Shown one piece after another: positions 8,695 through 51,074 of a stretch of DNA of 64,000 nucleotides; the first letter of the stretch is position 1; each line of letters starts with the position of its first letter. The notes under the pieces were generated by a model. That model was given only the letters and a program-made list of their open reading frames with translations, did not search any database and had not been told where the DNA came from. Made by a program: the position numbers and the translations under genes. Source of the DNA: Pavona decussata (lineage: Eukaryota); contig CDRNST010000175.1 in assembly GCA_977016875.1 (NCBI GenBank), positions 930,001 to 994,000 of the forward strand. The letters run 5' to 3'.

Positions 8695-8759
8695 TTAGCC
8701 TTAAACACTCTATGCTAATTTATTGTTACACCTTGCCGCAGACTCTGTAATTTTTTACT

Positions 8760-10540: not shown

Positions 10541-10569
10541 TAGTAGTAGTAGTTGTAGTAGTAGTAGTT

Positions 10570-10611
<42 letters not shown>
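10541..10611. repeat. (TAG)n microsatellite, the LINE tail
   Basis: Directly visible. Confidence 0.95.
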
Positions 10612-11469
10612 ATTGCTTTATTTGCATGACCACAAGATTTACAGTATTGCAAAAGCTTATATAATCTAATTACTAACAAAAACAGTGTAAAGTATCATAA
10701 CAATATATAATTAATTCTAAGTTACATCATCAATATCCAATAATAGCCTGTCACGTATAATCATACATGAAGAAATAAACTTCATAACCAGTTTGTTTAC
10801 ATTATAGTCTTTAGAGTTCATCAGTAGTTTCACAATGTCTGATGTCGATTTCGTTTGAATATCAGGTATCATTTTACTTATGTCTTCATAGAATGTCTGC
10901 CTCTGTAAAGAGTAGCAACTACATTGAAACAAGAAATGAGTTTCATTTTCCACTTGATTTGATTGACACAACTGACATAATCTTAACTCTCTAGGGAGAT
11001 GATCTTTCTGATATCTACCAGCTTCAATTCTGAGTTTGTGGTTACTTAATTTAAACTTAACTAGGTTTCGTCTATCAGGAAAATTTCTTAAATGAGTTAA
11101 ATAATTAGACGAAGAGTATTCATTCGTGAAAATCTTATAGAACTCTAACTTTTTTGAGTGTTCAAGATTGTGTTGCCAGAAACGTAGATACTTGTTTTTC
11201 ATATTAGTTTCAATTTGCCTTATTGTCTCATTGCTAAAATTTTCAGGATTTAGATCAGATGGATAGTATTTTTCTAACATGCCCATAAATTTGGAGTAAA
11301 AACCGGAATTATTAATGGAGTGTAAATGTTTTGACATCAGAAAAGATTGCTTAACGATAAAGTCATTCTCCTTATTGTTTAGGTAAACAAAGTATTTCAT
11401 AATTTTTTGGTTTATTGCAATAAGTAATGGATATCGCCCTAACTCAGCCCTACATGCTAGGTTAGAGGC
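10541..11469 (-). mobile_element. 5'-truncated RTE-X-like LINE with a (TAC)n 3' tail
   Basis: ORF 10717-11508: RAELGRYPL...FKLSNHKLRIEAGRY..RLCQLC...ENETHFLFQCSCY (C-terminal CCHC). On the minus strand AATAAA is followed by the (TAC)n tail at 10541-10611. Confidence 0.8.
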
Positions 11470-11500
11470 TAGTAGTAGTAGTAGCAGTAGTAGTAGTAGT
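11470..11500. repeat. (TAG)n microsatellite at the LINE 5' junction
   Basis: Directly visible. Confidence 0.95.
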
Positions 11501-12516
11501 TCAGGCAAACGCTCTCCAGGACAATTTCAGTCGGATCTTAGGTAGTGGGGCCATTATCTGCTTTGCGGCCTTTGCTTTCCTTCGTTGGCATTCGCAGCAT
11601 TCTCTTTTCACCTCACGAATCTCATATCTTGCCTGCATGATCCAAAATTGAGCCGACATCAATGACAGCGTGTGATTGGTTTCTAATGAGTGGTTGCTTC
11701 CCTTATGAAAAGATTTCATAATCATCCTCGTCACCGAATTCTTCCTTGGCAGAATGACAGGGAACCTTGCATTAAATGGCAAATAGTCAGTATAGCGTAG
11801 TCTGCCATCTGATGGAAGTAGGCCATCTTCGTCCAGGACTGGCTTCAAACTCAATAGCTTGAAAGAGCCTTCTGTTCTACCAGTGCCTTGTAATCTTCAT
11901 GAAATGCTTCCTTGATGATTTCGATTTCCGCATGTGCGATTTCTTGGCAACCCAGCTTCCCATAACTTCTCTCATTGATATGTATCCTGCAGTTGTTCAC
12001 AAATCGCCCAACCCATGCTCTAACTCTCACTAGTTTTCTCCAACTTGAAAATCGGCTGGGCTGTAAAGGGGAAGGTGTCTCTGGCATCAGAGCAAACAGG
12101 GTTGATTCTTGCACTGGCTCTCCAGACGTCTTCATTTTCTTCCCCACTTCCATTGTTACTTCGGGACTTGGATCAGTCTTTGTCTTTGGCCACGTTTCTT
12201 GGTCCTTGCTCAGAAAGGTCGGTCCCCGCCACCACATCTCACTTGGTTTCAATTCAGCAACTGCGGCTCCTCTAGTCAGAAGATCAGCTGGATTCTCTCG
12301 GGTGCTCACATAGTGCAACTGACTAGGATTATTTGAATCATGTATCTCCCCAATCCGATTTGCCACAAATGGCTTAAAGCTCCGGCTGCGACCTTGTATC
12401 CACCACAAGACTTTAATGCTGTCACTCTAAAATGTCAGTTGGTTCCTGTCAAACTTGAGTACCCTTGCTATAGACAGGGCCAATCTCAATCCCAAGATGG
12501 CTCCCATTAGTTCAAG
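11501..12516 (-). mobile_element. Older BEL/Pao element (BEL-A), downstream part: RNase H end to integrase zinc finger
   Basis: RLELMGA, FVANRIGEI, YVSTRENPADLLTRG, WWRGP, LLPSDGRL, FPVILP, H..H..C.EC, QIMAPLP; frameshifted. Confidence 0.88.
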
Positions 12517-12521
12517 CCTAG

Positions 12522-12915
12522 TGTGGCAACCGCTTTTCTTTCGAAGAAGGGCGCGCGGAAACGACGATTACAAAGGCCAAAAGTCTAACATAATCCGTAT
12601 TGGTCCTGTTTATTTTAAGTCACTAACTGAGATCAGGCGATCACCGAAAGGCAGAAAATCAACAAACATACATACAGCTTGAGGTAGTCCTACTGTTGAA
12701 CCGCATACAAGACCGTCAAAGACTGTAAGGCTACTAATCTGCACGGGTTGCGTGAGAAATTACTGTCGCTTCGAGCGAAGCTCAAACCAAGTCAAGACGT
12801 TCAGCGACGTCTCAGCTCCACGTGGAGCTTTAACAGTCCCGTATGAAAAGACGTCATGACATGTGATGTGTCTCGTTGCGTAACGCAATGCCTAAACGGT
12901 TGAGAGGCCGTTACA
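12522..12915 (-). repeat. 3' LTR of BEL-B
   Basis: 394-bp direct repeat of 23269-23662, with about 9 substitutions by eye. Confidence 0.96.
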
Positions 12916-13072
12916 TGGCTCCCCCAGACATGGTAAAATGTATGAAATTACAGTAAACAAATATGAATAAAACTAAATGTTCTCAGAGTTCACTAAGTAA
13001 AGGTCTCTCTTCCTGAGAATTGTTCTGGCTCCCCGACGGGGTCGTACTCTGGTCATTAAGGTCTACTCAAGA

Positions 13073-30459: not shown

Positions 30460-32051
30460 TGTAAGTGCGTAATCTTCACAAAAAGTGTAGGTATTTTTGC
30501 TTAGTAATGCCATATTTGAAATCCACTACACAGGTGTTTGAATCGCATCGTTTCTTTTCTTGTGTTTTTCACCTCTCATAGAATGTAAAAAGCATTTGTT
30601 AAATTGCGAGTTGTATGCATAGTAGAGATTTACTTGATTTGTGATAAAAATCTTATGAACTAGACTGCCGTGCAAGATGTAGCAGAATTTATAATCGAGA
30701 AGGACTTGGTGATATTTATTTAGCCCTTTGTTATGTATAATTCAAGGCAAACTAGCTTCGGGTTTATCACAAATAACAATTTTGCCTAAATTATTTACTA
30801 GTTTAATACTCCATTGTTTTTCAAATAAAAAACTAACAAAGGCTTGAAAAAATTCTTCAGGTACAAGTAAGGGGTTATCATTATAGTCCTAATATGTCTT
30901 TGTAAACAGAGTTAAATAATTATTCATGTAATTTAGATAGCTTCTTCCTGATTTTGGCGTTTCCTCTATAGGTTTCTTGATGGCTTTGTTGGCACTTCTC
31001 TGTTTGAAGGGCTTGTGACTACAAAGTGCTCTTCAAGGGTCTTCTTCAACCGATCTGTGGGTGGCTTTACCCTAGTAAAGGTTTCAGCCAAGCTCACAAA
31101 ATCGTGATGGATGGATTCTCCTCCTTGTTCACCAAAGAAACCTAAGGGGAACTTCTACTTCCTGATGAAGGGGACTGCGTGCTCCTCTAGCATGTGCATC
31201 TTTGGTGGAAAGGTTGATGTCGGAAAGCAACGTCTAAAGGACATCATCATCTTTTTGATAAGACAAAAAAGGGTGGTAATTTATTATATCGTTGTGTTGA
31301 AAATGACTGATACTGCAGTATAACACTTCAATTTAATGATGAAGTCAGTCATAGTAAGTAGTCTACTAGCATTACAAAAAATGTTCACTAACCAAGAACA
31401 GATATCGCCTCATCTGTTATTGGGTGGCTGCTGTTGCACTTCAAATGACAAGTGGAGAAGTCTTAAGTGACTGGTGCTTGTTCCGGATGACCTTGGCTGT
31501 TTCCAGTAGTGAGAGACAGTGTCTCTCAGTTGCATCAGCAACACCTCTACATATTTTGGATATGTTGGTGACCTGATGAAGTAAGCAATTTAAGTTTTAA
31601 AACTACAGTAAAGGCAATAAAGATTGTGTTGAAATTAGTATTGCTGTGACAACACAAAAATACAAATTCCAATACAATGAGATCTTGTGGTATAATCTTA
31701 GGGTAAGTTGTTGTTGTTTTGAAACTTTAGTACCTGCAAACAAATGCAGATAGGGATTTCCTTTAAAGCTGTTGCTATGTTAGGCTTGCCGCTTGACGTT
31801 CATTGCCTGGAGAGTGCTTTGGAAAGCTTCACTGATGCGACCAGCACCTTTTGGAAGTTTTAAATATTTTTTTACACTTGCCACAAGTGTTTCCTGTTGA
31901 GAAACGATTGATTGAGTGGGAGGGAGCTAGCTAATGATTTAAAACAAACCATTGTTAACTGGTTTTGTTTACAGCATGGCATAGTAGTGATTGTTACCTT
32001 CCCCTTTGCTTTCATCCTCAGATCCTGGGCATGGGCCAGTAATTGAGTCAC
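30460..32051 (-). mobile_element. RAG1-like (Chapaev/Transib-related) transposon copy A/C, 3' part
   Basis: Exons NVKRQAYHSNSFKGN..CLQ|gt (~31733-31860) and FPPKMHMLEEHAVPFIRK*KFPLGFFGEQGGESIHHDF..DRLKKTLEEHF (~30937-31255), with the catalytic-type E at 31116-31118. Terminal repeat not found; left boundary approximate. Confidence 0.8.
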
Positions 32052-32171
32052 AAGACACGTCGATTTCAAAGAGGAAATTTAGTTTATTTGGCCCGCGAAC
32101 TGATTTTACAGCGGACGCCTCCATGAGGCTCATCTCCCATAGCAAAACGGTTGCTTCATTGTTGTCGGTTC

Positions 32172-32310
32172 AATGAATGAATGAATGAAATCTTTATTTA
32201 AACATGGTAAAAATATAAGGGTAACAATAGAAAATGACGAAATTCATCTTAAGTATAATTTTCTATTTACTGGTTTACATATTGGCCGTGTGGGAGTCCG
32301 ATACAGGGAG
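32172..32310 (-). mobile_element. Short LINE 3' tail, (TTCA)n, inserted in copy B
   Basis: (AATG)4 followed by TCTTTATTTAAAC, which reads as AATAAA plus a tetranucleotide tail on the minus strand. Confidence 0.5.
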
Positions 32311-32999
32311 CCATCTATCAATTTTTCTCTTGAAGTTGCGTAGAGATGTTGTAGTGCGGATATCCTCAGGAAGGGAGAGGGAGGAAAAGTATTGTTTTAG
32401 AACTAATGAAAAATGAAGGAGCAAGGGAATTCTCGAAATTTTCGCCCAGAAAACCCGATGCGTAATTTCACCGTCCTTTTAGCAGTGTTCTGGTCGCCTT
32501 AAAGTATTCGAAATTGTGAACTGCTCTGAATTTTATGCAACAGATGACACTCAAAACTTCGAATAGTGATACTGGAAGAATTCGATTGTGTGGTAAGTGT
32601 TTTATTATTAATTCGTTCTTTTGCGTAACTCAGCACCAAAGTTTGGGGTTTTCCACGTGTTGGGACGCCATTTTTAAATTCCTTCCCCGGACTAAAGAAA
32701 TAAGCAGGTTCTTTTTATTCAAATTTTTCCATTTTGCTTGGGTTTTTTAGCATCATGGAGCAATGAAATGTCTTTATTCAGTCAAAAATAAAGAATATGC
32801 CACTTTTAGTATAGAAGTAATGATGTTTTGGGCAGTTTCAATCGCTAATAAACGTGTGAGCAAGACTTGATTGAATTTCATGAATCACAAAAGGCAAAAT
32901 ACATAAGCTTCAGTTTTACAGGGTTTCAGTGTAAAAAATATAAAAGTGCTATAATACAAAATGCTAATACAGCTGTAGTAAAATATAATAAAACAATCC

Positions 33000-35900
33000 G
33001 TGTATTCCAGCTCTGCCTGGTTCCTTTTCAGGTTTCTTGTCCTCTTTTCAGGCATGATTTTCCTGTCTCTGGGTGGACAATCAAGTAGTGCTCCTGCAGC
33101 TTTTGCTTGAGCCGATCAGTGGCTGGTTTGACTTTGCAATATGTTGCAAGTCGCACAAATTCATGGTGAATGGATTCACCGCCCTGTTCTCCAAAGAAAC
33201 CAAGTTGGAAGTGCCATTTTGAATGAATGGGGCAACATGTGGAGCTTTTGATGGAAGCTTTTGTCACTAAACCTTGTTGTGATATATGCCATCAGTTGTT
33301 TGATGTCATCCTATGAAATTGAAAAGCAGTCAAAGACAATACGACATCAACTTGCTCTTGGTTACGGTAAAGTTAGGTGGTTAACAATAGTCATTTCCCA
33401 ACCACTGGTATGTCATTACCTCAAGGACATTGGAAGAACTAAAAAGCTTTGCGAATTTTATATTGGCATTCAGGGCCGGAGATGGTAAGAAGTTAGACCC
33501 GGGGAACTAGGTTGCGTTGGCATTTGTTTTTACCCTCAGTAAATTAATAAGTTGGTTGGTAGCGTGTAGCTAGTACAACATAATTTGAATTCCAAGTTTG
33601 TGGCTACGGGAATTTATCAAAACTTGTGGTAGCTTTTATTCCACTCTTAAGTGTTATATACCTTTTTTGTAATCAATTTTGTTGATTAGTTTAGTTCCTT
33701 TCTCCTAGGTGGAAAATATGGGCCAGGTGTTTTTATAGACAAAGTTTACATTTACCCAAGACATTGATTTCAGGTTCTTTCATTGGCTTGCTTGAGTTTT
33801 AATCTTAAAGTGACACGTGGCGAACAGGGAGAATAGGTTGAAATATTTTTCTCTGATGCCTTCTGCGATTCCATTTAATTCTGGGCAGGTGTCTCTGGTA
33901 ACATTTGTGACAACACTGCAGAGTTTTTCAATGTTCCTTCCCTGTAATGAGTCAGTATGGATTAGACAGCCATTTAAAAAATGCATTTTAAGATTTTGAA
34001 TGCAATAACTAGTAAATGTGTGTACCTGAAGACAAATGTTAATGTGATTTCCCACAAAGCTGTTGCTGTGGTACGCCTGTCCTTTCACGTTTATTGATTA
34101 GAGAGTGTTTTCTAACTCTTTCAAAATTGTGCCTTCCTCTTGGGCAAATTTTGTGGCTGCTCTGATGTTGACAGCAGCAGTCTCCTAGTAAACCAAGAAT
34201 AAGATTGAAATGTTGGGAGACATCATAACAGGAATGAGAACATTAAGTAAGACCTGTCAAGTGTGGGGGTAAAGGGGTCTAGGTTTGTTACTTTACCTTG
34301 TTCTTGCAGTAGTTTAAGCGTGTCCAAGAGTTGTGATATCACAGGATGTCCCTGGGCATTGTCTAAGTCAAGCGTTTGTAATAATAATACCGACATCCTA
34401 TTTTGATTGACATGTAATTTAATACTCTACTACAATGTATTGTATCAGCGACGTCTCCATAGGATATATAGTTTTTAATAAACCCATGGTCTAGTCAACT
34501 ACTCTGTCCGTCCACTACTCTTTTTCCGAAACCTATTCGTTAACAACCCAGATCATTACAGCGTTGATGCGGCAATGAGATATGTTATGTACTCCTGGGT
34601 GGCTGCTGCTTGCTCCAAGTACTGCTTGGCTTGTGTCTCATGTTTATGTGCTTCTCTTAGGGACTGTTAGTGAGAGTCAATGGTTAAATCATTAGGATCT
34701 GCCTCACTTTCAGCAAACTTGGCGATGATCCTTTCATCCATTTCACTGCACTCATTTTTATACAGCACATAATACTTGAGAAACAAGCCAAGGCTAATGT
34801 GGAGTCCAGGAATACAAATCTGAAAAGAGTAAGCAAAATTACAATTAACAGCAATGATATTAGTATTAAATTATGGGTATCTATGTCATCTTTACTTGCT
34901 CTACGGGAATGTTGAAGAGAGGAGCATGTATGACATTGTAGAAGTCTTTAGCCTTCTTCACGCCCCCTCCACCTGCCTCAAACTTCTGTAACATTTCGCT
35001 CAAGTGCTGGATGGTGCGGATACTGACTGGTCCTCTCTGGTCCTTCGGCAGCTTCATTTTGATTGATAGTATAGTACACCAAAGACATGGATTTCGTCCT
35101 AAAAATTAAAAAAAGAAGTTACGAGATAGATTTCGTGATAAATATATTTGTATCTGGGACTGTCTTGATAATAAGGAAAACTCACCATTTGCTCCTGTTA
35201 TTCCAATGACTTTACAAAGGAATTCGTAATCCCCGAACATAAACAGGTGGATAGTTTGGTTTCTAAATGTTTCAAAAGAAACAAAAAGAGTTTGGAAGCA
35301 AATGAGATTATCCAGCAACAACAATTAAACAATTAAAGTGATCATAGAAATGGTAGTATTGATCATATCTACTCACTGCCACTGTTTGCACCAGATCATC
35401 AAGCTGTTCCTTGTGGGGCATTGTCGCTGTTATCATGTTGTTTCTGGTGTCCTTTGCTTCGAACAGACAGAAATTACATTCTTCTTGCTTGAGTTGGGCT
35501 TCTCAACATTGGCCAAGTGGAAGCCAAACTTCATTGAGCCCTGTCCATGATCACCCCCAATTTTCTCATAAATTTCACTGCCAGGGGTGTTCCCATCGTG
35601 CTAGGTTAAAAGCTCAGCCCTGATAACATAATGAACATGCAAATAGTAATTATTCTAGTAAAACGTTCTTTTTAAATAACTGTCTTAAAATACTTTTAAA
35701 AAATGTTAAACCAAACAAGTTGAATATTCACTTTGAATTGCTATTAATGAAGTTTATCTTTTCTTTGACATCTGCTACATAGGCACATGGAGTTCCCTTG
35801 ATGACTGTCACCACCTTCTCCCCTCTTTTCTCCAAGTGTTCCATTGGCAGCATCTCCGACCCGAGGCTGTTTTCCCATCAGCTGATGCCTTCATTTTGGA

Positions 35901-36798
35901 CTTTAGGAACAAAGTACCCATGCATTTCGGGGGAAATCTGTCCCTGGCAAAGCTGTTCCATTGCTTGCTTCCTCCAAAGTGGCTGAAGGGGAGTCAGCTG
36001 CTGGGTTAGGGGCAGGGTTGGGGACTGCAATATTAGCTTGGCCAGTTCACAGATGGTTTTTGTGGTCTTCATAGGAGAGCTCACAGTAACAATTCTTACA
36101 TCCTACCTAGAGTTCTGCTATAAGCCTCAGAACCATTCGTGCTGGCTTCTTTTATGTGGTCTGCTGAGCTCAGCGGTCCTGCATGCCAGGCAGTCTAGGG
36201 GAAAGCCTGAAGACTGAAGGGCCTGTTTGAAACATTCCCCACAGAAATAGTGTTCACAGAGTGTTTCCACTGGTTTGAATTGGATGTCTTTACAAACAGG
36301 ACAGTAAAAATCTTCCTTGACTTCCTGTGAAAATTCAATGTCTGATAGGAAATTGGACTGTCCATTTCACTGTCTTCAACTTTTCGAGTGAGACTCAAGG
36401 CCGTCTCTTGTCGCTGGTGATCTGCTGTTGGGGGTCTGTTGCGTTGTTCTAAATTTTTTCTTACCCCGTTTCAGTTTTTTAGCTCTTCCTCCCTTCTTTT
36501 TTTCCTCGGCGCAACAGCATGTGACACAGTCATAATCGCTGTGAATGTGCCAAAAACCGGGTCCTTGTACTCGAGTTGGTGAAAGGTAACAAAGGTTACA
36601 GAATTGAGTGGGATGAATTTCGGGGTCATCCTTTGAAACATTCATGCCAAACTTTTCGATCAAGAATTCCCTTTATTCGTCACAGGAGTAACTTGTATCA
36701 TAAGGATCGTTAAATTTCGATAGAAATCCAGCACATATACAGAAAAGTCGTCCTAGGGTCTGATTGTTTTCGTCCTCATTGGGAGTAGCGGTGGCCAT
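33000..36798 (-). pseudogene. Intron-containing RAG1-like transposase of copy B (N-terminal Zn domain, RING, ZnB, DDE core), with stops, frameshifts and the NBD region deleted
   Basis: ATG at 36798. DDPEIHPTQFCNLC..WHIH..CVTC; RING CPVC..PVETLCEHYFCGEC..CLAC; IGGDHGQGSMK (D at 35550-35552); LFMFGDYEFLCKVIGITGANG|RNPCLWC (D at 35229-35231); GLHISLG; QAYHSNSFVGNH; GFFGEQGGESIHHEF (E at 33175-33177). GT/AG introns. Confidence 0.88.
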
Positions 36799-37280
36799 GT
36801 TGAAATCAAAGGGTTGTTACGAGCTATATTAAATTTGGCTGTTACTCGCGTAGACAAATTCCTAATAAAAATGTGAGCTGGTGGTGATTTAAAGTAAAGG
36901 GTATTCTACTTATCTGATGGATTCTTTGTTGCCAGAAAACTCAGAGGTGTCAAGAATGTCGTAACAAACTTCCTTTATTTCTCAAATGCGCATCCGCCAT
37001 TGCGCGCCAAAGAGCGAAAATACTGCCTCTCTGTTTGTCTCAACTTGTCCCACAATTGCCCTATTCTTTTTTCAGCTATTACTTTATGATCTGTTACGCA
37101 TATATATCTTTCATCACCTACTACTACGCATTACGTTTTTCCTTCCATATGTCTGAAGGGTCAAGTCGCCACTTCTGCTCTGTTAAGTATTAACAGCGGT
37201 TCTAATGACTAACGTGAAGTTAATAATGCGCGGTCAACAAGCTTGTTTCCTCTGAGCGCCCTCTGAAATCGACGTGAAGA

Positions 37281-40040
37281 GGATTGAGATTAGTCTCTTG
37301 TAACAATTACAATCCTCACGTTGTTTCTAGTGTCTTTACCCTCATAGAGTGAAAAGACCACAGTGTTTTTAGTAGAGTTGGGATGTGGGACACTAGCCAG
37401 TTGAAATGTTAGTTTCATTGATCCCTGACCATGGTCACCTCCCAAGTTCACAAAGATTTTATCTTCTGGAATGAGACCACCATACCAAGTCAGCAGTCCA
37501 GTACTGGAAACGAAGAGAACATACCAGAAGTTAGTATCCGAATACTGTAGTGCTGCTGAGGGCCAAGGTTTTAAAGGATTGAACAACAGACAACGAACGT
37601 CTTTACTCAACGTTTTATTCTCAAGCACACCACTTCTGAAGCCCTACACAAGGAATATATCTGTCACAAGATATGTGTGTCATGAGTTACACTAGTCACG
37701 TGAACACAGCTTTGCTACAATACTTTATAATTTACATCCCCACGCAGTTTAAAAAGTCATGGGAAAAAATGTTTGTTACCTGAAACAACTTTCTCTTCAA
37801 GCCAACCCTATAGGCATATAGGGTCTCCTTCATGACCGTCATGTTTTTTTTTCCTCGTTTCTCGTGGTGCTCCATGTGAACAAATTGGCTTTCCGGGTTT
37901 TCTCCAACAAGGCTCTTTTTCTGGAAACGTTGCTTCCTCTCGCTATCTAACATATGTTCCATTGTTTGAACCATCTAAATATATGGAAAATGTTTAATTC
38001 ATTCAGAGACAACCTGGGAGGAATTTAAAGCTCCAGGAAAGCCCCAGATCAGCTTTCATTGCCAGTGCTTCTCCCTCTGGTAACTCTAAAATGAGGTCTT
38101 TTCCCAGGGCATCTCTCAACATCTTTTCCAGCTCGTCCTTGGAAATGCTAGTTAGGTGCTTCACCACATGAATGGTCATTTGGTGCCCGCTTACTGAGGC
38201 ACCAAACCGTTGAAGGTCCCTTGTTCTGGTCCGCACGTGACCATCACTGACCTGGTCACTAGGCTTTTAAGCTTGGCGTACAACACTAAAGTTCAAGGGG
38301 TTGACGTGGAAACATAATTTTGAAGGGCACTGAATGAACTATTCCAAAGCATAGTAAATGAAATTTGTCACCAAAGTTGTCAGTGAGTTTATGCTGACTT
38401 ACCTTACCACCTGTTTTCAGCATGGTATTGCCATCATTTGACTCTGTAAGCTTGGATTTCACAAAAAGCGGTCCCAGCTTTTTAACCTCAGGTGATATCA
38501 TGCCCTCTCTTAGTTCCATGATAGCTTGTTCAAGGCTCCCTCTTGGTGGATTCAAAGGAGGGGCAAGTGCAGGTTGCAGTGCCAGGGGTATGGTTTGCAC
38601 CCTTTGTGCTGTGTTTTCAGTTATTGGATCTGGACAGATGTGTTTCCCACTGTCTTCGTAGTGGCATTTGTTTTTGCATCGTTTGCATTCGACCTCTAGT
38701 TCCCCCAACAGATGGAGAATCATTCTTGTGAGTTGCTTGAGATCACAGGGTAAGATTTCCTCCTTGCACACTGGACATAATAAAGAGGTACTGGCAAAGC
38801 TTACTGCTTGTCTCAAGCGCCCTGCACAAAAATAGTGCTCACACATTGTCTCGATAGGGAATCCAAGAATCTCTCTGCAAACTGCTCAATTAAAGTCCTC
38901 TTTAACCTCCCCCACACATTCGAATTTATCCAAAAAAAAATTTCAGTGCAGTTGACTAACAGGCACGTAGAAAGCTCCTGGATGTGTTCAAAGAGTGCTT
39001 GACTTTCTAAGCCTTGGTCAGTGTTACTGCTTACACTGTCAGTGGTTTTCTTTCGACCAAGGGACTCTTTTTAGGAGGCCTTCCACCTTTTTTATTTTTA
39101 GCCCAAGAGAGAACTTTTACAGTCACCTTTATAGTAATGATAAGAAAAGCAAAGACCGATACAATGTGGAATTACGTTTTAGAGTTTACTATATTTCGAC
39201 TGACCTTTTTCAGGTACAATGAGAATTTGCATTGGGACATGCGCTTATATTACAAGTATTTGTGCAAAAACAGAACTACTTAAAACTAAAGTGATTGATA
39301 GTATAAAAGATGAAGCAAATGAAAAAATAAAAAGGAACAAAGCTAGTAAATTTCTTCGCTAATTTTCAGGCCATGTGGAAGAAGTGTTCTTCCTTTTGAG
39401 ATTAGAAAGGCTTTCGTCCTTACGGATTAAGTCTCAGTTGGAGTAGACTTTTTTATGGGGATTAATTACATGTCGTTAGTGGTGTGGAAGTGTTCTGTGG
39501 CTTTGGTTTACTTACCCTCATAGTGTCTCCCAAACCATAGAGCTGTGTGTCTTTGAGTTACTTAAATAGCACGCGTTGCCTTTTCAGTTTCCAAATCAAA
39601 CTTCTCTTGCAACATTTCTCTATATTCTTCGCATTTGTAGCTAGATTTCCACTGATCTTTGGATTTCTGTAGCTTATTACCATGAATGTGGCATAAAGTT
39701 TCGAAGCATTCTGTATGAAACTGATGAAAGTCAGTCATGTTGGACTGAAGATAAGGATATTAAGTAGACCCAATAAAAGAAAACTCGGCAACCAACAAAT
39801 ACAATTTCTAGCCCAATAGACTGAAAATATACCAATGTTTCTTGAAACGAACCTCTTTTTAACGGAAAAACTTCAGGAAGACATAATTTCAAATTCTCTA
39901 TTGATTTCGCAACATGCTTCCGCTATTACGTTCTTCCTGCGTGATTTCAAAGACACCCCAGTCATTATTGATGATAACGTATTCTTAATATTCTAAATAT
40001 GCGCAGACATATCTTTCATCACTAGCTACTGCACATCCTG
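37281..40040 (-). mobile_element. RAG1-like transposon copy A/C, 5' part (Zn domain, RING, NBD-like region, first catalytic D)
   Basis: ATG at 39738 (MTDFHQFHTECFETLCHIHGNKL). KKGGRPPKK; RING VCREILGFPIETMCEHYFC..CPVC; VECKRC..HIC; LKTGGK|gt; GEALAMKADLGLSW; LGGDHGQGSMK (D at 37434-37436). Conserved subterminal motif at ~40000-40035; TIR lost. Confidence 0.88.
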
Positions 40041-40789
40041 AACTCTTGGCTAGTGAGTCTTCAAGACAGATGACTTTGTCATCAGAGTGTGGAGGTAAAC
40101 CGATGTCAGGTAACTTGGTTTGCAGTCGCACCCAGATAGGAGGGAGTCTGTATTATCTGGGTGTCCATATTAACCGGGCTCTTAGAAAAATGCTGCAAAC
40201 ACGTCTTATTGATACAAACACTACAACAGACCTTTTTTGCGACAACAAAATGTTGTTTAATTTCTCAACTGTACAGTCACTGAAACCGTAACTGTAACAA
40301 GTTCAAACTAAAGAAACCTAACGCTCATTTATCAGTCACAGACTAAAATTACTTTATTGTTCTTGAAACACGACAATCCAGTCAAAGTCCTCATCCCCAT
40401 CAGCCCCCATGTGGTGGCTGATGCTAATAGCGGAAAGCAAAGGATGTCAAAGAGGAAGTAGGCTACAAGCAGTGACTGCAGCAAGGCCAAGAAAGTGAAA
40501 CTTTTGTGTAGGCATTGTAGGCAGAAAACTCGAAGTATAGTACAAGGGTCAAAAATTGGATGAAAGCCAGACTGATCATGTCACGCTATTTTGCTACCTT
40601 TTTGCAGTACGAAATCGTATCAACCTGTAGAAATCTGGCATTATTTTAACAGGGCACAATACCTACAATTAGCACACGATTTTCACAATGAAAATAGACA
40701 GTGTGTAGCTAAGCATTGTCCATAAAATGGGGTTGATGGTGTAAAAAAGTTTGTCCCTCAGGACACAGAAAGTGTGCATTGTCCGTATT

Positions 40790-40919
40790 AACCAGTGGTC
40801 GTATTATGTAGGCTAATTTTAGAGAAAATATATGAGCTTTTTGTCAGGACAAACGAAACCGTCCATAATATCCAATTGTCTGTATTAAACGGGTGTCCAC
40901 AGAGCGGGGTTCCACTGTA
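40790..40919. mobile_element. Partial Tc1-type MITE end
   Basis: Ends in GCGGGGTTCCACTG-TA. Repeated GTCCGTATTA-like motifs, also present at ~40145-40180. Confidence 0.4.
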
Positions 40920-40929
40920 CGGCGTAAAG

Positions 40930-41810
40930 GTTGGATGCAGATGTACACACACAGGAACTGATGCAAGGCATTTATCCACCTTTATCATCGAAAATTTTAC
41001 ACTTGGACGTTGGCCTGAGGCCACAATGTGGTGAGTTTCCTGTGTTCTACACCACTAATAACAAGGAGCCTTTCCTTGCTTGGCTATTAAATGAAAGACT
41101 ACACTTTGCTGCGAATTTAGTACCGTGCTTTGGGCTTGGTGTCCTTTGTGGGCTAGCTGTATGACTCTTCCTTGAAGGCTAGCAGGTGCCACTATTCAGG
41201 TATCTCGGAGAATCATTTTGAAGCTGTCATCAACAGTGAGTTCATCTTGAACACTTTGGAACGGTAGCAGGGGGCATGGTTGACATCATTTCACCCTTTG
41301 TGGTTTTTTACCTTACACCACACGGTCTCTCCCATGTCCAGGGTGTCTGTTTTTTTGTCAGCTAGCATAGAGGCTTGGTTATTGTTGCAAACCCTTTCAT
41401 GTACTGCCATGCCCAGAAAAGAGCGGAGTTAAGTTTGGTTCCATGGTTCAACTGCATTTTGAAATGCCCCCCTTTCTAGGGGCTGGGGCTATGCCATCTT
41501 TAGATTATAGTGGGTTTGTTAAATTCGCACTTCTGTGGATTGGCGTTTTGGCCTTGCACTTTATCTAACACTTGGACATGTTTGCTCTGTTCTTTGCACT
41601 TGGGATGTCAAACTACTTCTGGTTTTCGCCATTTTACCTGTAACAGTGTACACTGGGACTTGCTTAAATTCGGAATTATCAGGATTTTGCACCTCAACAA
41701 ACTCATACAACAACGAAGCATCAGTTGTTTGCATATGCTCTGTTAAAATTTTGATGGTTTCCGATGGGAATTTCCTAAACATTTCGCTTATTTGTAGATC
41801 TAGATTCACG
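40930..41810 (-). mobile_element. Heavily deleted Gypsy-type LTR retrotransposon remnant
   Basis: LRSFLGMA..FATITKPL..LTKKQTPWTW (~41330-41440, RT/RNase H linker). HRKLTTLWPQAN (~41010-41045, integrase). Confidence 0.5.
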
Positions 41811-43102
41811 TAACTATTTCAATATTCCACAACTTACAAGCAATGTAAGGGGAATTACCTGAACTGAATTGAAAACTGAACTGTTGATCAGGCCATGGTT
41901 TTCATTTACAGCCTGATTATAGATGACGTGCGCCTGGGATCTGAAACTTTTCACTAAATGAAACAAAAATCTGAAACCCGATCCCATACCAATCTGATCA
42001 TGAGCGATCCAGGTGCAAAGTGGATCATTTAGATTGCAATCTAAGATTGGTTTAGTCCCTAATGCAACGGAAAATCGAATTGTCGATCTCAAAATCCCGA
42101 TTTTCATTGATTAAAAGGAACACGACCCAATTTTAACCCCTTTGCATACCACATTTTATCTTTAATTCCTTTTATTATAAAGTGAAGCCAGATGGAAAAG
42201 CATATATCAGAAGAGGAAACCATGCTTTTCCAAGTGATGACATCAGAGATTTGTTCAGGCTGCAGCACCAAAATGGCCTCAGTCTACCAGAAGCTGTTGC
42301 CAACATCAGGAGTTTCCTAGTGCCTCATGAGTACACACGCAACCATGACAACCCATGGCAAGCATGACAACCCAGAAACCATGCTGGACATGCTCAGATA
42401 AGTTGTGCACTACCAGTCCCTGGTTCCTGTCGGGGTAACCCTTAAAGACTTGGCCAATCAGAACTCCTAAGCTAAACTTCCATATAATAAAACCTTGTCT
42501 TATACCAAAAAGTGAACACAAGTGTTGTGGGGTACTTAGATCACCTTGAACAGTTTTCTTTGTTATAACCAGTTGCTTTTTCACACAGGAATCATAATTG
42601 AAAACTGTGATTCCTCACTGAGGGAGTGTTTCATCATTGTCCTCCATCACACGATAAACCTGCTACTGCTCCTTCACTGCTTGTTTTAGGAGCAGGGCAT
42701 TCTGTTAAACTGCTGTACTTTCGGTAAGAAATGCCTGTATTTTTTGCCACGGTCCTTGGATGATGACATACTTAAGTGTCTTCCTGGAAAGCTCGTCTTG
42801 ACCATGTTGGTATATTTTATTACAGTGGAACTAAACGTCCAATTTGTTTTCGTTTTAATTGATTCTATTAACTTCCCTGATGATTCCAGCGAAAACGATT
42901 TTGGAATAGCTTTTTTCCATAAATTTTTATGATTTTGTGAACTTTAAATTTTGGCGCTCTTTTGATCCACCACCACGCGTGAAAGGAGAATAGGACGAGC
43001 TTGAGTGTGACGTAATCCAAGGAGTTAATGTTTAGCACGTGACGGCACGGCAAAAGACAACTTGGAAAAATTTCGATAGATGCGAGCAAGTTTTCCTTCA
43101 TT

Positions 43103-43751
43103 ATGCCTGATGTGTGTGTCGTTTACGGCTGTAACAACGTAAGCAATCCACCACATGGAGTAAGTTTCAACAAGATACTGTACTATGGTAAAAGGAATCC
43201 GGAGGAAGTCAGAAGCTCTTGCTCCAGCTGTCTGTTTTTTCTCTCCTTTTTTCTTACACTTTTAAATTTAGCCATTCTTCGTCTGCCAAAGGTTCACCCA
43301 CATAGGCAGCCATATCACTTTCATCGCTTGAATCACGTGACTCGTGCTCCGCTTCGCTTTCTACTTTGATGGCAAAATAATCATCTTTAGAATAGTCATC
43401 TTCAGAATCTAAATTCTCCTCCTCTTCCATGCCTCCTCCTCACTTGACTCGATATATTCATCAGGTGAGGCCATGTTCAAATTTTCGCTCTCGACAATAT
43501 CTTGCTATCAAAACCCAGTTAAGTGTTTCTTGAAAGCATAGCGCGATAGTCAGCCTACTCCTTGGATGACGTCACAGTATAACTCGATCCAGGTCCCCCA
43601 GATTCGAGGCTGTGGGTTTTAAGACAAAGTTCAAACGGCTCTAGAAATGCAAGAATTTTATCAATCTCGATAATTTTTTCAAATGCTTGACCAGGACAAT
43701 TAGCAGATTTAATTTAGCAAAAAAAAAATTGGGGGGTTAGTTCTACTTTAA
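43103..43751. mobile_element. Internally deleted Kolobok-type element: THAP head (+) fused to an acidic head of a P2X7-C-terminus-like accessory gene (-); TTAA end
   Basis: MPDVCVVYGCNN...GVSFNK (THAP start) at 43103. Minus-strand MASPDEYIESSEEE...AYVGEPLADEEW from ~43474. Terminus ...TTCTACT-TTAA at 43748-43751. Confidence 0.6.
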
Positions 43752-44759
43752 GTATGTAATTTAAGGCTACTTGAAAGGTGTATAGTTACCTGTCTGTGTC
43801 TGCTTTTCTTTGCCATGATACCCTCCACCAGGCGAAGAGTAATGGTATGAAGATCTATTTTTAATTGGAATTTTTCTTTGCTAACCTGAAGAAAAATTCT
43901 GCCTTTTGTAATTCACATTTCCATTGAAAGAGTGCCACACTGGACTTTGCAGATGAGATCTGAAGCCTGGCATAGGTTCCCTGTATGGTGGCTTACTGTG
44001 GAGATGAGGACTTGGGGTTTTTTGATACATTTTTAGTCCACAGTTTGCTGTGAATGAGGAATTCTAAATGGTGCTCACTGGTTTTGCACTTTTTTTTGGT
44101 GATTTGGAATGGTTCACCCTTTGTTCCTAGTACAGATAACAATCATCTGTGCTATTTTAAACAGATTCCAGCACAGAAAATTTTTCCTTGTCTCAGCAAA
44201 AAAATTAATCCTGGTTCTTTCTCTGGAAACAATGGAAAAGAATTCAAATGTTATATATAAACATGCATGTGCCTGGTAGTCACCAACAGTGGTTTTAAAA
44301 TGTCCTGTCTTTACCTATTTAATTTGAAATTCTCAGACAAATAAATGTTAAATGTCATAAAGTAATGATCTCCAGTCTCTTCTTAAAACTATCCCTTCCA
44401 CCCATCTTTTTGTGATCAATGCATGCAAGTTTCCAACGAATCACATTTTGTCTGCACAAACTAACAACTCCTACAGAAGTGGGAATTTCTAGAGTTTCAA
44501 CACAGAGACAGTGTGCTTCTGCTACAGGAATTTTCTTTAACTCCTCAGCTTTTGGTGTAGGATTCTCTGGTGTTTTGTAAATCAGTTGGGATTGTTGCAC
44601 CAATATATATACCAAGACCAGGTTTAAGGCCGACGCCATCTTGGAGAAATACAGCTTCAGCTTGGATCCCTGAGTAGGGAAAATTATCGCAATATTACTG
44701 TTTTCATACAATGTAATGCTAATAAAGTTTTGAACCAGTGAGCAATAAATGCCATATTT

Positions 44760-46100
44760 GTGTCAGATCAAAGAAAGAAGAAGTCTTTCTCTGTGGCAAG
44801 ACAGCCACGGGTATTAAAACATGAAGGAACTTCTGCGTAATGTTTTAATACAGCTTTTATTGGTAAATTTTATTGGTTATGTGGTGTGTATGAGCCCATG
44901 ATAGGATTTTCAGTAAAACGTGCCACCAGTGGACCTGGCGGAGATGGCCGAATCCATATGTAAGCACGGACGAGACAGACAAACGGAAGGATGAATGAAC
45001 ACAAGGCCAAAACCACAAAGGACACTGAATGACTAATTTAATAACCACAGGATGTCCCTAGGACACAAGGCAAAGTGAACAGACACAACCGAATATCTGC
45101 ACGACCGCGCGAACGAAGAAACGGTACCAATTGCCAATTTCACGGTTGTTTTTCCGAATTGGGGGCTTCTGGTTGTTCTTGAAATACTCATTAATAATTA
45201 AAAGCTATAAATTAAATTAATGAAAAATTTGCAGAAAAAAGAAACTTAATTTTAATGACTTAAGTGCGCGTAGCATAGTGAACTTTTTTGTCAGATTTTT
45301 GCGTCAGATCGCAGAAAGAAGTCTTTCTCAGTAGCATGACAGCCATAGGCATAAAAACATGAAGGAACTTCTTCGCAATGTTTTAATAGAGCTTTTAATA
45401 ATTAGTGAAGTTTTATTGTTTATAACAAGTTGATGCCCATAATTGTTTTTGTCAGTTTACTAGAGACGGAATAAGTCCTACTCTGTAGCATTGCAGCTTA
45501 ATATTAAAACATGAACAATGCTCTTCTAATGTTTTAATATGACTTTTATATTTAGGGTTTACCAAGAGAGCCCATGATAGAAATTTGGGTATACCGTGCA
45601 ACCAGTAGAACTGATGGAGAAGGCTAAATCCATATGTAAGCACGGACAAGACAGACAACCGGAAGGATGAATGAACACAAAGCTGAAAACCACATAGGAC
45701 ACTGAATGGCTAACTTAATAACCAGACAATGCCCAGAGGAAACCAGACAAAGTGAACAGACAGAACTGAAAGTCTGAATTACCATATGAACGAAGAAACA
45801 TGCCAAATGCCAATTTCACGGATGTTTTCTGAATTACAGGCTTCTGATTATTCTTAATTACTGTTAATTGATAATTTGGATCTAGATTATATTAATAAAA
45901 ATAGTTTAAGGAAAAAAAACATTAACTGAACCATACAGATACAAGGCAAGAGATAGACAGATGGAACGAGGAGTGAACAGAAGGCCAAAACCGCTAAGGC
46001 CAGTGAATGATCAACTAAATAATCAAACAGTTACCACACGGATGTCAGCCCAAATGAACAAACCACACGACTGAAAGTCAGCCCAGCCCTATAACCGAAA
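44760..46100. repeat. Diverged tandem repeat, about 550-680-bp unit, about 2.5 copies
   Basis: GTCAGATC..AGAAAGAAGTCTTTCTC..AAAACATGAAGGAACTTCT at ~44762 and ~45303. GAGCCCATGATAG..ATCCATATGTAAGCACGGAC..GGAAGGATGAATGAACACAA at ~44892 and ~45568, partial third copy at ~45950. Confidence 0.8.
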
Positions 46101-46943
46101 GATCAGCCCAAGACAACAACTACATGGTTGAAATAAATGAGCTATTTATATATATATATTTAATTTATAATAAAAGTTTCCTCATTTGTTTTCAGATCTA
46201 TCGTTGTTTTTATGCATTTTTAATTTATAACAATTGTTTTTTTCTTTGCACATCTGATTGATGGTGAATTACATAGTAATACCCGTTAGCACTACTGCTT
46301 TGATTTCAAAAATGAAGGGAACTGTTCATTGTTTTCCATAATTTTTTAACTTTTAATTTTTAAGTCTAAGCCCGTGCAGAAAGTGGAAATAAAATTATAC
46401 TATGCACGGCGCTTTCAGAGCGGACATTTAGTTGACCCGCGCCTGCATTTACACTTCCCAGCATGCACTCAAAATCGGATAGCAACCGCATAGCAACGGG
46501 GACAGCGCCTTTGTTTACGCGTGGATTGCTGAAAAGCCTTTGTCTTTGGACCAATCAAAACTACGCTTTATGTGGCCCTAAGGGAATATTCTGTTTCAGA
46601 ATGGCGACCAGGGATGTTGAAGAAGAAGGCCGATGTCGTAAACCCGAACATTTTTGTTTAAATTCTCGCAAACCTGGACCCAAACGAACACAGCGTGATT
46701 CCTTGGACATTTCTTAATTACGTCGACTAACCTAAATTGTCGACTGGTGGCTTCAAACAAGGAGTTTCCCGGAAGATTTCAGGGGCTATCGCGGGGAGAC
46801 TTATGATCAAAGATTCACTTTTCACGGTAAGTTTATCTATAGAATGCCCACTCGTCGCGCAATTGCTTCTGAGATTTTTGGATTTCATTCGCTCACTGCT
46901 GCCATATTTTAATGATAACCCGACCGCGCTGCCCTTTCCCCTG

Positions 46944-47651
46944 GATCTGTAACAACTTGTTTAACGTTCTTTAGACAAATAAGACTTTGTGTTTATCTTT
47001 ATTTTCAATATTTCGGATAATTATAATCTGGATATTGAACAAAAATTACATCTGTACAAAGTATTAACAAAACGTTGAAGCTGAAACTATGAAAGAATGC
47101 AAAACTGGTGTGATTTCATCTACAATTTATGCCAATGTCCGGTAATTTTAGTGTGGCAAATTTCACTTTTCAAATTTAAGCCCAAATGTAGCTAGCATTT
47201 TAAGTTGAACCACTGGGTCTGGATTCCTCAACTTCGGCTGCTTTTCTCTTTAGGTTCCTTGTGCGTTTTTCTGGGATTAATTCGCGCCCTTTAGGGCGAT
47301 CTGTAACAACTTGTTTAACGCTCTTTAGACAAATAAGACTTTGTGTTTATCTTTATTTTCAATATTTCGGATAATTATAATCTGGATATTGAACAAAAAT
47401 TACATCTGTACAAAGTATTAACAAAACGTTGAAGCTGAAACTATGAAAGAATGCAAAACTGGTGTGATTTCATCTACAATTTATGCCAATGTCCGGTAAT
47501 TTTAGTGTGGCAAATTTCACTTTTCAAATTTAAGCCTAAATGTAGCTAGCATTTTAAATTGAACCACTGGGTCTGGATTCCTCAACTTCGGCTGCTTTTC
47601 TCTTTAGGTTCCTTGTGCGTTTTTCTGGGATTAATTCGCGCCCTTTAGGGC
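46944..47651. repeat. Near-perfect 354-bp tandem duplication inside copy D
   Basis: Units 46944-47297 and 47298-47651 both start GATCTGTAACAACTTG and end CCCTTTAGGGC, with about 3 differences. Confidence 0.95.
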
Positions 47652-49312
47652 CGACAACAACGTAATGTTGTTCAAGCATCTTTTTCAAGCGCTCCGAGGC
47701 TGGCTTGACGACAATGTTGGTTTGCTCGAAGAGTTTGAACTCGTGGTGAACTGATTCGCCGCCTTGTTCACCAAAGAATCCCAGAGGAAACTTTCATTTC
47801 TTGATAATTGGCACTACGTGTTCCTCGAGCATATGTAACTTCGGAGGGAAGGTTTCATTGGGGAAAGTGCTTCTGTAATAGGCAGTAAATTTCTGTATGT
47901 CATTTTCATATTACCTTCGTAATCTGTCCAAACGATACCAGGACAACCCAACGTCTTCTTTCATGGACAGTGCCTGGCCTTCAGGTAGTTCGAGGGTCAG
48001 TTCAGTCACAAGGGCTTCTGACAGTAGTGTCTTGCGTTCCTCTTTACTCTTCTGGCGTAGCATCTTCACCAGGTGCTTGTCCATCTCTCCACTACTGACT
48101 GCATCGCCCATCTTCTTTATGGCACTTGTTCGGCATCGAAGGTGCCTTGCTGATACCGATTCACTGGCCTTTTCAGCTTGGGCTAGACGTGTAAGTACTA
48201 GGGGCTGTGTGTTCAAGAATTAAAAAATAATAAAAACTGGTTTACCATTACAGTGTAGATAATTTTCGAGTGTCCATAACATTATGACAGATAAGGAGAA
48301 CCGTGCTAACAGAACAGGGCATTTTTCCATACCTTTCCAGGTCCAGCCAATCTTGCTGTCTTTCCATCATCAGAATCCTTCATCAGGAGTTTAACGGCAG
48401 CAGTGCTAAGCCTTACCACATCTTTAGATATCTTGCCCTGACTTAGCTCTGAAAACGCGTCTTCGAGGGTGCGTTGCGGGGCAGGTGCAGCAGGTTCGGG
48501 ATTCTGGGGTGGAGCCACTTGGTCAGGTGGGGTTGTTCCAGCATCACATTTATGATTGAGGCAATTTTGGTATTCTAATTCCTGCTTGCATGCCTTACAG
48601 CGAACATCCTGTTGGCAAATCAACTGGAAGAACACCCTCGGGGCAGTTCTGAGGTCTGATTCATTTGTTAGGTTGAACTTACACATTTGACAAGAAGGTG
48701 GACCATCCATAAATTGTATTGCTTTAGCCAAGCAGTCAGCACAGGAATAATGGCTGCAAACTGTTTCAATTGGTATATCCAAAACGTCTTCACAAATGGG
48801 GCAGAAAAATTCGTCTTTAATTTCTCAATGAGTTCGAAATTTTCCCCAAACTGGGGGTGTCAAAGTGATGGTTTAGAGTCTCTTAATGTGATGACCTTCT
48901 CCTTCAAAACTGTTTTGATTGTTTTTATACTGTTCGAATTAACCGTATCATTCGTGCTTTTTGGGGCATGTTTTCCTCCTCCTCTTTTGGATTTTTTGGG
49001 TCTCCCACCCTTTTTGGCTTTCTCCTCTCTTGTACATGTGCTACAATTGCCATCGTCCGTATGGATTTCCCAGTAATTGCGCTTGCGTGTGTGAGTAACA
49101 TAACACAAGTTGCAAAACTGCGGAGGGTGAATAGCCGGGTCATCTTTTTCAGTGTTGATTTGGAAGTTCTCCTCCAAAAATGCCTGGTGGTCCTTGCAAC
49201 TATAGGATATCTGGTACGTTCGTTTTAACTTCTTGAGTCGATTTCCACAAATTCTACATAAATTTGCGAGATTTTGAATGTGAATTTCATTGACCTCGCT
49301 GCCCTCTGCCAT
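47540..49312 (-). pseudogene. RAG1-like transposase of copy D: N-terminal non-core region and NBD-like region joined directly to the last exon
   Basis: MAEGSEVNEIHIQNLANLCRICGN..FQINTEKDDPAIHPPQFCNLC..WEIH..CSTC..KKGGRPKK; RING CPICEDVLDIPIETVCSHYSCADC..CQMC; VRCKAC..HKC; GQALSMKEDVGLSWYRLDRLRR; then FPPKLHMLEEHV..GFFGEQGGESVHHEF. Confidence 0.9.
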
Positions 49313-51074
49313 GTCTACCTTCCAGATGACTGTCGTATTAAATGGGGCTCTATTTCCAAAACTTCGCAATCTATAGAAACGGGGGTTTAAGAATCGAAGA
49401 CTTTAAGTGTAAAGTAGTAACTGGGAGTTAACCAGTTGTAAGAGAAAACTCCACGCAAAACACAATTTAAGTCCAAACATTTTTATTATAAGACACGCAC
49501 CCGCCATTACCCAAAATCGCCACACAACGGAAAGCGATTTTCTGCGCTATGCTAGACTTGTCAGGTTTCGTGCCTATGACTACATTACTTAGTTATGCTA
49601 AAAATTGTTATTGCGCATATATATCTTTTAACACCTTCTACTACGCATTGTATTTACTTCAGCACTGTTTTGTGCGTGATCTATCCTCACTGCCACTGTT
49701 AGTTATTAACAGACTTAATAACTACGGAATGCGGTCAAGTTAATATAGTGCGGTCGCCAAGCTTAATGTCCGCTCAGGTCTGGTTTGAAAGTGCCGTGTG
49801 TGTTAGTAAAACTGGTGAAGATAACTAAGCCCCATGGAAAAAGTTATTTATGTATAATAAAACACTGGCTCTGGTCCTTTCAAAAGCTTGATTTATTTTT
49901 CCGATTTCTCATTTCAGAAATGCCAATGAGAAAAATTATAGTTTTGTACACATTCTGTCAATCTCTCTTAATGTCTTGTTCAGTTCTTTGGTTATTAAAA
50001 TTTGTTGAGCAGATAATTGCTTTGCCTTGATTAGCTTTTGCTTCAATATTTTGCTTTCTTGCTCCTTTTTCTCTTTCCTTTTTTGTTTTTGTCTATTTTT
50101 TTCTGCACTTGATAATCCTTCCTTTTGTTTCCTTCTTTTGCCAATTTTCTTTGCTTTCTTTTTAAGTTTTCCATTTTTTTCCATCTAAAATGCGTGAGGA
50201 AATTACAAAAGTATTGGTTGATTTTAAACTGTAGCCTGTAAACATAAGCATCATTTTAATAGTGGCAGACACTATATTTCTATATTAGACTTTATATAAG
50301 AAATTGAATTTGGTAAAAAGCTGTTTGTGAGCTCACAATAATTTAATACTTAAATATTCAAAGGGTTGGAGATGCAAACCTCTTTTCTTCAGGAGTCCAG
50401 AAGGCTTGCATGGTTTCTTGGCCGCTAGGTAGGGATGGGTGTAACTTCTGTAAATAACCGAGTTGGGACTGGGCAGGAATCCGTTGTTTGCAAATGTGTA
50501 AGCTGGCCAGAGAACCTACACGTTTCAAACCATTTGGCACTAACTGGCTGGGCCCTTACGTGCACTCTACCCTTCAAAGATTGAAGTATCCTATCTTCTT
50601 ACGTGAAAAATTAATTTTACAAGTAACCATGCCTTTCTTCAGGAACAATCCTGACTCTTCCAGCCGGTGCGCAATATTTTCAAGCGTCTCGTCTGATTCG
50701 TTCCCTGACTGGATGCAACAAATGAATGGCTGGTGAGTCCATAATACTGGTTAGAATTACTATAGTGGCGAATGTGGGATAATGGGGTGCTAAAAAACTT
50801 ACCATTTTTTGCTAGATTCACCTGCATCAAACCAGAGCGGCAGATTTCTCTTTGGTATATGCCTATGCCGACATACGCGACATAAGTACGCAAAATCAAA
50901 GCTTGTCAGGCGTTAGACTATTTTGAAAATAACGGGAAGAGCTCATGCAACAAAGAAGCCGTTAAAATAGTAGCTTGTGCAGTCTTAACTGCGGAAAATT
51001 TAAAAATTCGAAATGACCGTAGTACTACCAACCGTTTACCATTTGACGATTGTAATTCTTGTGGGCAATTTGAA

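Follow-up and report, generated by a model that had tools for sequence, protein, structure and literature searches.

Anthozoan Chapaev transposons of Pavona decussata carry bipartite ends whose spacing differs by about one helical turn

Why should the two ends of a transposon with a single gene differ in length by about one turn of the DNA helix? The question is raised by a 64,000-nucleotide stretch of the Pavona decussata genome (GenBank assembly GCA_977016875.1, contig CDRNST010000175.1, positions 930,001 to 994,000 of the forward strand), referred to here as the window. It holds two transposon copies, B (32056-37276) and D (46405-49798), in which a terminal box and an internal box are separated by 2 base pairs (bp) at one end and by 11 or 12 bp at the other. 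A sequence-only reading had described these as asymmetric, 12/23-like ends on RAG1-like transposons and had suggested that the family may require one short and one long end, without RAG2. We find that B and D are copies of a low-copy anthozoan Chapaev clade with one multi-exon transposase gene each, and that the two spacing classes hold over about a dozen diverged lineages in several species.

All four ends of B and D match the sequence-only reading exactly. The B ends read CACGTCGATTTCA-AA-GAGGAAA from 32056 on the plus strand and CACGTCGATTTCA-GAGGGCGCTCA-GAGGAAA from 37276 on the minus strand, and the D ends read CACGGCGCTTTCA-GA-GCGGACATT from 46405 on the plus strand and CACGGCACTTTCA-AACCAGACCTGA-GCGGACATT from 49798 on the minus strand. 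The window contains four matches to the terminal-box pattern CACGKCRMTTTCA, solely at these ends, where 0.48 are expected by chance. Because both copies have the transposase gene on the minus strand, the long spacer marks the gene-upstream end (37276 and 49798) and the 2-bp gap the gene-downstream end (32056 and 46405). Box 1 comprises positions 1-13, at the cleavage site; box 2 spans about 12 bp with the consensus GCGGACATTTAG; and box 3 is GC-rich. This third box, which had also been claimed, is present at all four ends, as GACCGCGC (B) and GACCGCAC (D) upstream and as CCCGCG downstream in both copies. The gaps at the two ends of an element differ by 9-10 bp, about one helical turn. The two copies are laid out as follows.

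32056..37276, minus strand: copy B, a Chapaev element of 5221 bp, assigned from its ends, exon matches and Pfam
32052..32055, plus strand, and 37277-37280: left and right copies of the 4-bp target-site duplication of B, AAGA
32056..32068, plus strand: B downstream box 1, CACGTCGATTTCA
32069..32070, plus strand: B downstream 2-bp spacer, AA
32071..32082, plus strand: B downstream box 2, GAGGAAATTTAG
32092..32097, plus strand: B downstream box 3, CCCGCG
37264..37276, minus strand: B upstream box 1, CACGTCGATTTCA
37253..37263, minus strand: B upstream 11-bp spacer, GAGGGCGCTCA
37241..37252, minus strand: B upstream box 2, GAGGAAACAAGC
37228..37235, minus strand: B upstream box 3, GACCGCGC
46405..49798, minus strand: copy D, an internally deleted element of 3394 bp
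46405..46417, plus strand: D downstream box 1, CACGGCGCTTTCA
46418..46419, plus strand: D downstream 2-bp spacer, GA
46420..46431, plus strand: D downstream box 2, GCGGACATTTAG
46436..46442, plus strand: D downstream box 3, CCCGCGC
49786..49798, minus strand: D upstream box 1, CACGGCACTTTCA
49774..49785, minus strand: D upstream 12-bp spacer, AACCAGACCTGA
49762..49773, minus strand: D upstream box 2, GCGGACATTAAG
49748..49755, minus strand: D upstream box 3, GACCGCAC

The transposase exons of B are decayed, with stops and frame breaks. D retains the N-terminal exons, exon 2 and the C-terminal exon, and its catalytic exons are entirely gone; its flanks, TATG and TGTG, agree at three of four bases.

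The arrangement in B and D is that of the family. Ends were drawn from the P. decussata genome, Nematostella, other anthozoan assemblies and metagenome contigs, the other assemblies being reached via homologous first exons. In total, 20 gene-upstream ends have a gap of 11-12 and 14 gene-downstream ends have a gap of 2, and all seven complete elements in which both gaps could be measured are long upstream and short downstream. The sequence-only reading had considered a chance deletion in one copy unlikely, and this judgment is borne out by the conservation of the short/long arrangement; the survey of spacer lengths that it had set as a check likewise returned only these two classes among the family ends, with no free variation and no symmetric case among the seven elements. 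The P. decussata genome (602 Mb, about a dozen loci) contributed nine upstream ends, belonging to five lineages and all with a gap of 11 or 12, and five downstream ends, belonging to four lineages, in which the gap is exactly 2. Searching this genome with the gapped pattern gave 11 matches, seven of them family ends and four due to chance. No short non-autonomous derivative and no element with two like ends was seen among them, a result that carries little weight at such a low copy number. Elements from the other sources, Nematostella and three further assemblies among them, gave the following gaps.

L024, Nematostella vectensis: upstream gap 12, downstream gap 2, target duplication AACA
L028: upstream gap 12, downstream gap 2, target duplication ATGA
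L026: upstream gap 11, downstream gap 2, no target duplication
L033, a Tara metagenome contig: upstream gap 12, downstream gap 2, target duplication AGAC
L037: upstream gap 11 in the CCGGACATT register, or 12 if box 2 is CGGACATT; downstream end not found

A scan of JGI metagenome contigs for box 1 and box 2 separated by any gap of 0-16 gave 18 matches, of which 11 bear family hallmarks, namely box 3 or a box-3-like GC-rich stretch and, where the contig suffices, a correctly oriented transposase exon. A gap of 12 is seen in six of these, each with an upstream-type box 3 and, on contigs that are long enough, the N-terminal exon next to it. In the other five the gap is 2 and a GC-rich stretch resembling box 3 comes next, with the C-terminal exon adjoining in four; L044 is the sole gap-2 match whose contig has no transposase exon. 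The remaining seven matches, with gaps of 6-10, lack box 3 and transposase, and a similar number is expected by chance. Three metagenome copies of one lineage differ in their flanks and so represent separate insertions. A few ends were incomplete (the L008 and L011 downstream ends are truncated, and the upstream box 2 of C241 is deleted), and the ends of L023, L025 and L029-L031 were looked for and not located.

Some copies in this collection have unusual surroundings. The complete element L026 runs from 7518 to 12953 with gaps of 11 and 2 and is flanked by GGTA on one side and CCAT on the other; its flanks may have been exchanged through recombination between copies. In five Tara metagenome contigs from different samples (L032-L036) a single element is found in the same position, its flanks identical throughout, a pattern that suggests one insertion fixed in a host species rather than five events. 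The B-like copies at L017 6777 and L018 2414 (G000:C43 and G000:C216) share the flank beside the upstream end at about 86-88% identity and look like a duplicated segment rather than two insertions.

Exon-sized reading frames were searched against Pfam one by one. The first exons in the window match RAG1_imp_bd, the RAG1 N-terminal zinc region (E = 2.7e-7), and a RING finger, and the window's catalytic exon, which bears a GGDHGQGS motif, matches DUF1280 (E = 5.8e-10). Full-length database relatives have the same combination of domains, with DUF1280 matches up to E = 7.5e-23. Neither the window exons nor these relatives match the RAG1 core (Pfam PF12940) at E up to 1. Matches of the relatives to RAG1 in the PDB rest on the N-terminal zinc domain and the RING-zinc-finger region, residues 8-243 of relative P0059 matching RAG1 residues 106-374 at 4e-8. 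None of them extends to the RAG1 catalytic core, and P0059 residues 205-420, past the RING, match no RAG1 chain. The order of domains in the transposase is a RAG1-like N-terminal zinc domain (Chapa), an invariant GGRPxK basic motif, the RING, a conserved helical region and a DUF1280-type core. DUF1280 has been equated with the Chapaev transposase and, within the RNase H-like enzymes, placed beside RAG1 (PMC3985635). Chapaev elements are recognized by CAC..GTG termini and by target duplications of 3-4 bp (PMC4079192), and in some of their subgroups, from lancelet and Nematostella, a RING follows the Chapa domain (PMC4411706). A 2026 preprint about the N-terminal zinc domain of RAG1 likewise treats the Chapa-RING subgroups.

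The ends agree with this assignment. All 34 that were examined begin with CAC save one CAT variant in L037, and a perfect 4-bp target duplication flanks six of the eight complete elements (AAGA, ATGG, TTAA, AACA, ATGA and AGAC); of the other two, D agrees at three of four bases and L026 has none. A 5-bp duplication of the Transib/RAGL type was not found, as the 5-bp flanks disagree. The best-preserved copy, on L006 (G000:C47, element at 2225-7499, 5275 bp), has open exons and is occupied by a single multi-exon gene with transposase exons at 2679-6719. No RAG2-like partner gene was found in this element, whose other open reading frames are antisense pieces of at most 83 amino acids; since the transposase gene fills it, there is no space for a second, RAG2-like gene, in line with the "without RAG2" of the sequence-only reading. 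Transcripts of L006 were sought: no RNA run contains it, and the few contigs recovered, 90-95% alike, come from related copies. The description of these elements as RAG1-like transposons in the Transib or ProtoRAG sense has to be given up, given that the catalytic exons match DUF1280 and not the RAG1 core and the duplication is 4 bp. "RAG1-like" fits the N-terminal zinc and RING portion and, remotely, the core; the elements are not Transib or RAG-like.

Directly past the N-terminal zinc domain, the first-exon alignment (window 48863-49402 and 36379-36672, both minus strand) contains a KKGGRPKKxKRG motif in which G, G, R and K are invariant, a distant relative of 951 amino acids included. The motif might contact DNA in the manner of an AT-hook or act as a nuclear import signal.

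Is the spacing maintained, or merely inherited? Alignment of 12 upstream ends gives an information content per position of 1.75 bits for box 1, 0.57 for the spacer, 1.40 for box 2 and 1.51 for box 3. The long spacer is the least conserved segment of the end, and it is its length that is kept and not its sequence. The earlier claim that the long spacers are similar in length and unrelated in sequence holds for length; the spacers are not wholly unrelated, as most begin with RA and many have GC at positions 5-6. An origin of the spacer as a tandem copy of box 1 was considered and is unsupported (p = 0.22 against shuffled spacers, nine lineages). The shared RA and GC bases suggest residual common ancestry and favor the view that one ancestral 10-bp insertion or deletion at one end was simply passed on, the spacing having no function. 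All lineages are of common descent, and the distant element L022, which is without the architecture, is in line with such a history. However, the subterminal DNA of the lineages cannot be aligned outside the boxes, the spacer itself is near-random, and none of the 34 ends falls outside the gap classes of 2 or 11-12. Moreover, at downstream ends the distance between box 2 and box 3 ranges over 8 bp while that between box 1 and box 2 is constant, so that insertions and deletions are tolerated, and accumulate, a few bases from the fixed gap. We therefore consider neutral inheritance decidedly unlikely.

Two further observations bear on constraint. The first exons of the lineages, which encode the N-terminal part of the transposase, are only about 30-40% identical to one another. 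Box 2 agrees with that of the partner end in the same element at 8.0 of 9 positions and with those of other elements at 6.9 of 9 (permutation p = 0.004), in keeping with the earlier statement that the boxes co-vary within elements. Taken together, the diverged exons, the randomised spacer, the drifting distance between box 2 and box 3, the co-variation of box 2 and the separate insertions argue for selection on the spacing.

A possible role of the long end is regulatory, the upstream-only 10 bp serving transposase expression or the binding of a host factor instead of pairing. The long end is invariably promoter-proximal, and upstream ends carry more end-specific motifs. One is a conserved ATTAAC near +57. 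Another is the palindrome CTGTTAATACTTAACAG (core GTTAAT-N3-TAAC), found in upstream ends only, about 75-105 bp inside the terminus. In the window it lies at:

37178-37198, minus strand: palindrome CTGTTAATACTTAACAG of copy B
49694-49714, minus strand: palindrome CTGTTAATACTTAACAG of copy D

The palindrome is also present in the upstream ends of L006, L010, L024, L028 and L033 and is conserved from Pavona to Nematostella. In the C47 lineage both of its arms have changed jointly, CAG...CTG replacing CTG...CAG. It could be a promoter, a site for a dimeric factor or an additional transposase site. The 10 bp itself does not behave in this way: it is the least conserved part of the end, as would not be expected of a promoter element or binding site, and what persists is a length, lying between two boxes that are common to both ends. 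A regulatory role is in our view unlikely.

A repeat that resembles box 1 was also encountered. Arrays of a 20-bp unit containing CACGGCAATTTCA, which is nearly box 1, occur in L038 at 452-562 and 934-1011 (G000:C10:1647251-1647810) and at G000:C24:1950158-1951565 and 3184166-3185721. They lie inverted on both sides of units of about 600 bp, and elsewhere extend over more than 1 kilobase. An unrelated repeat of the foldback type may account for them, or else a derivative in which a transposase-binding motif has been multiplied.

The explanation that we favor, with a probability of roughly 0.55 for its parts taken jointly, is that B and D are anthozoan Chapaev elements, that their short/long bipartite ends are fixed, and that the transposase pairs unlike ends. 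One module of the transposase would read box 2, while another would read box 1 and cut there. A shift of one turn would leave boxes 1 and 2 on the same face of the DNA and alter the distance between them, so that the same contacts would be possible at both ends and yet the geometry would differ, creating two distinct substrates. The synaptic complex would then preferentially or obligatorily join one long and one short end, and such pairing would suppress the joining of like ends from neighboring copies. No RAG2-like partner would take part. Candidate readers of box 2 are the Chapa zinc domain, the GGRPxK motif and the conserved helical region encoded by the next exon. On this view the transposase may require one long and one short end.

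Several points weigh against this explanation. For none of the candidate readers of box 2 could a link to any known DNA-binding fold be made: a profile built from the helical (exon-2) region found no match among solved structures, and the predicted structure of this region is of low confidence (predicted local distance difference test score, pLDDT, 58) and found no Foldseek match. That like-ended pairs would be poor substrates is an inference. The family is low-copy and no near-identical copies were seen in the P. decussata genome, which gives no sign of recent activity, and the extra 10 bp at the promoter-proximal end could serve expression instead. Finally, the distant Chapa-RING-DUF1280 element L022 has a plain 10-bp inverted repeat with no detectable box 2, and the bipartite architecture may therefore be confined to one, anthozoan, clade.

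An equivalent of the RAG1 nonamer-binding domain was also sought; neither the exon-2 profile nor residues 205-420 of a full-length relative match any solved structure, a result that speaks neither for nor against such a domain.

How do these ends compare with those of other elements? Known Chapaev elements of the CMC group, in their Chapa and RING subgroups, are alike in having CAC..GTG termini, a 4-bp duplication, a single gene, the Chapa zinc domain with a RING, and DUF1280. The fixed bipartite end with 2 versus 11-12 bp is what sets the window elements apart: no description of asymmetry or of a spacer in Chapaev ends was found in the literature searched, which did not cover the original Repbase Reports, where a prior description is possible. 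CACTA (En/Spm) elements, of the same CMC group, have CAC-initiated short terminal repeats, internal binding motifs and non-equivalent ends; their ends contain many dispersed subterminal repeats, and two proteins are needed. In contrast, the window family has a single gene, and its ends have a single internal box whose distance is fixed. One-turn asymmetry is known from three other systems. In some Transib families the 5' end resembles a 12-bp signal and the 3' end a 23-bp signal (PMC1131882). The ends of Ptychodera RAGL-A (PflRAGL-A) differ by 10 bp, and some RAGL-B elements are also asymmetric in length (PMC10462144). The Drosophila P element has 9 versus 21 bp between the terminal repeat and the internal transposase-binding site, which its authors liken to 12/23 signals (PMC7776569). 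The Chapaev case is apparently undescribed in the literature that we searched.

Like V(D)J signals and the ends of Transib and RAGL-A, the window ends have a CAC-initiated box next to the cleavage site, a spacer that varies in sequence and not in length, and an internal box, and they come in two spacer classes about one helical turn apart, one of each per element. The differences are considerable. The window elements have a DUF1280 core with no Pfam RAG1 core; their duplication is 4 bp, whereas that of Transib and RAGL is 5 bp; and they lack the RAG2-like convergent partner gene of RAGL. Where Transib and RAGL have a CACAGTG-like heptamer and an A/T-rich nonamer-like box, the window family has CAC only and the box 2 consensus given above, and its gaps are 2 and 11-12, with the long end upstream of the gene. 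The P element is alike in the unequal spacing between terminal repeat and internal site at its two ends, and differs in its unrelated, THAP-domain transposase, which depends on guanosine triphosphate, its 31-bp repeats and its 8-bp duplication.

Could the ends nevertheless derive from the ancestral asymmetric ends of Transib and RAG-like transposons? Chapaev was placed with Transib in one analysis (PMC4411706) and DUF1280 was grouped with RAG1 (PMC3985635); some Transib families (PMC1131882) and RAGL-A (PMC10462144) have asymmetric ends, and all these ends start with CAC. Past CAC, however, there is no sequence likeness, box 2 is no A/T-rich nonamer, the gaps are 2 and 11-12 rather than 12 and 23, and the polarity is reversed, the short end of Transib being the 5' end where here the 5' (gene-upstream) end is the long one. 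The distant Chapaev element L022 has no asymmetry. The P element is unrelated and yet has 9/21 spacing (PMC7776569), which indicates that the feature arises independently. Direct homology with 12/23 signals is unlikely, and we give it very little credence. The likeness to 12/23 signals is a fair analogy for the architecture; a pairing rule of the 12/23 kind is a proposal.

The neighborhood of the two copies contains further family sequence. Copy B, with its clean AAGA duplication, is nested in another diverged member of its own family, whose own ends were looked for and not located. The parts of this interrupted host copy are:

37277..40040, minus strand: upstream part, with N-terminal, RING, exon 2 and catalytic exon pieces
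30945..32055, minus strand: downstream part, with the C-terminal exon at 30945-31247

Copy D contains a 354-bp tandem duplication (99% identical) at 46944-47597, which covers part of its C-terminal exon.

To our knowledge, the RAG1 N-terminal zinc domain together with a RING is found outside the RAG lineage in Chapaev transposases only. A one-turn difference between ends might be an old trait of the whole Chapaev-Transib-RAG lineage, imposed by the transposase alone, with the spacer measured by the RAG1-like N-terminal region or the helical region past the RING. This proposal is a long shot; if it were true, 12/23 logic would be older than the capture of RAG2 and the split between Chapaev and Transib. 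Should the asymmetry prove neutral or regulatory, the finding would reduce to a close account of how a known family builds its ends. The question bears on RAG ancestry, that is, on whether end asymmetry was inherited or has arisen repeatedly. Having strictly conserved short and long ends and no RAG2, these Chapaev elements would provide a simple one-protein system for studying how the pairing of unlike ends is enforced.

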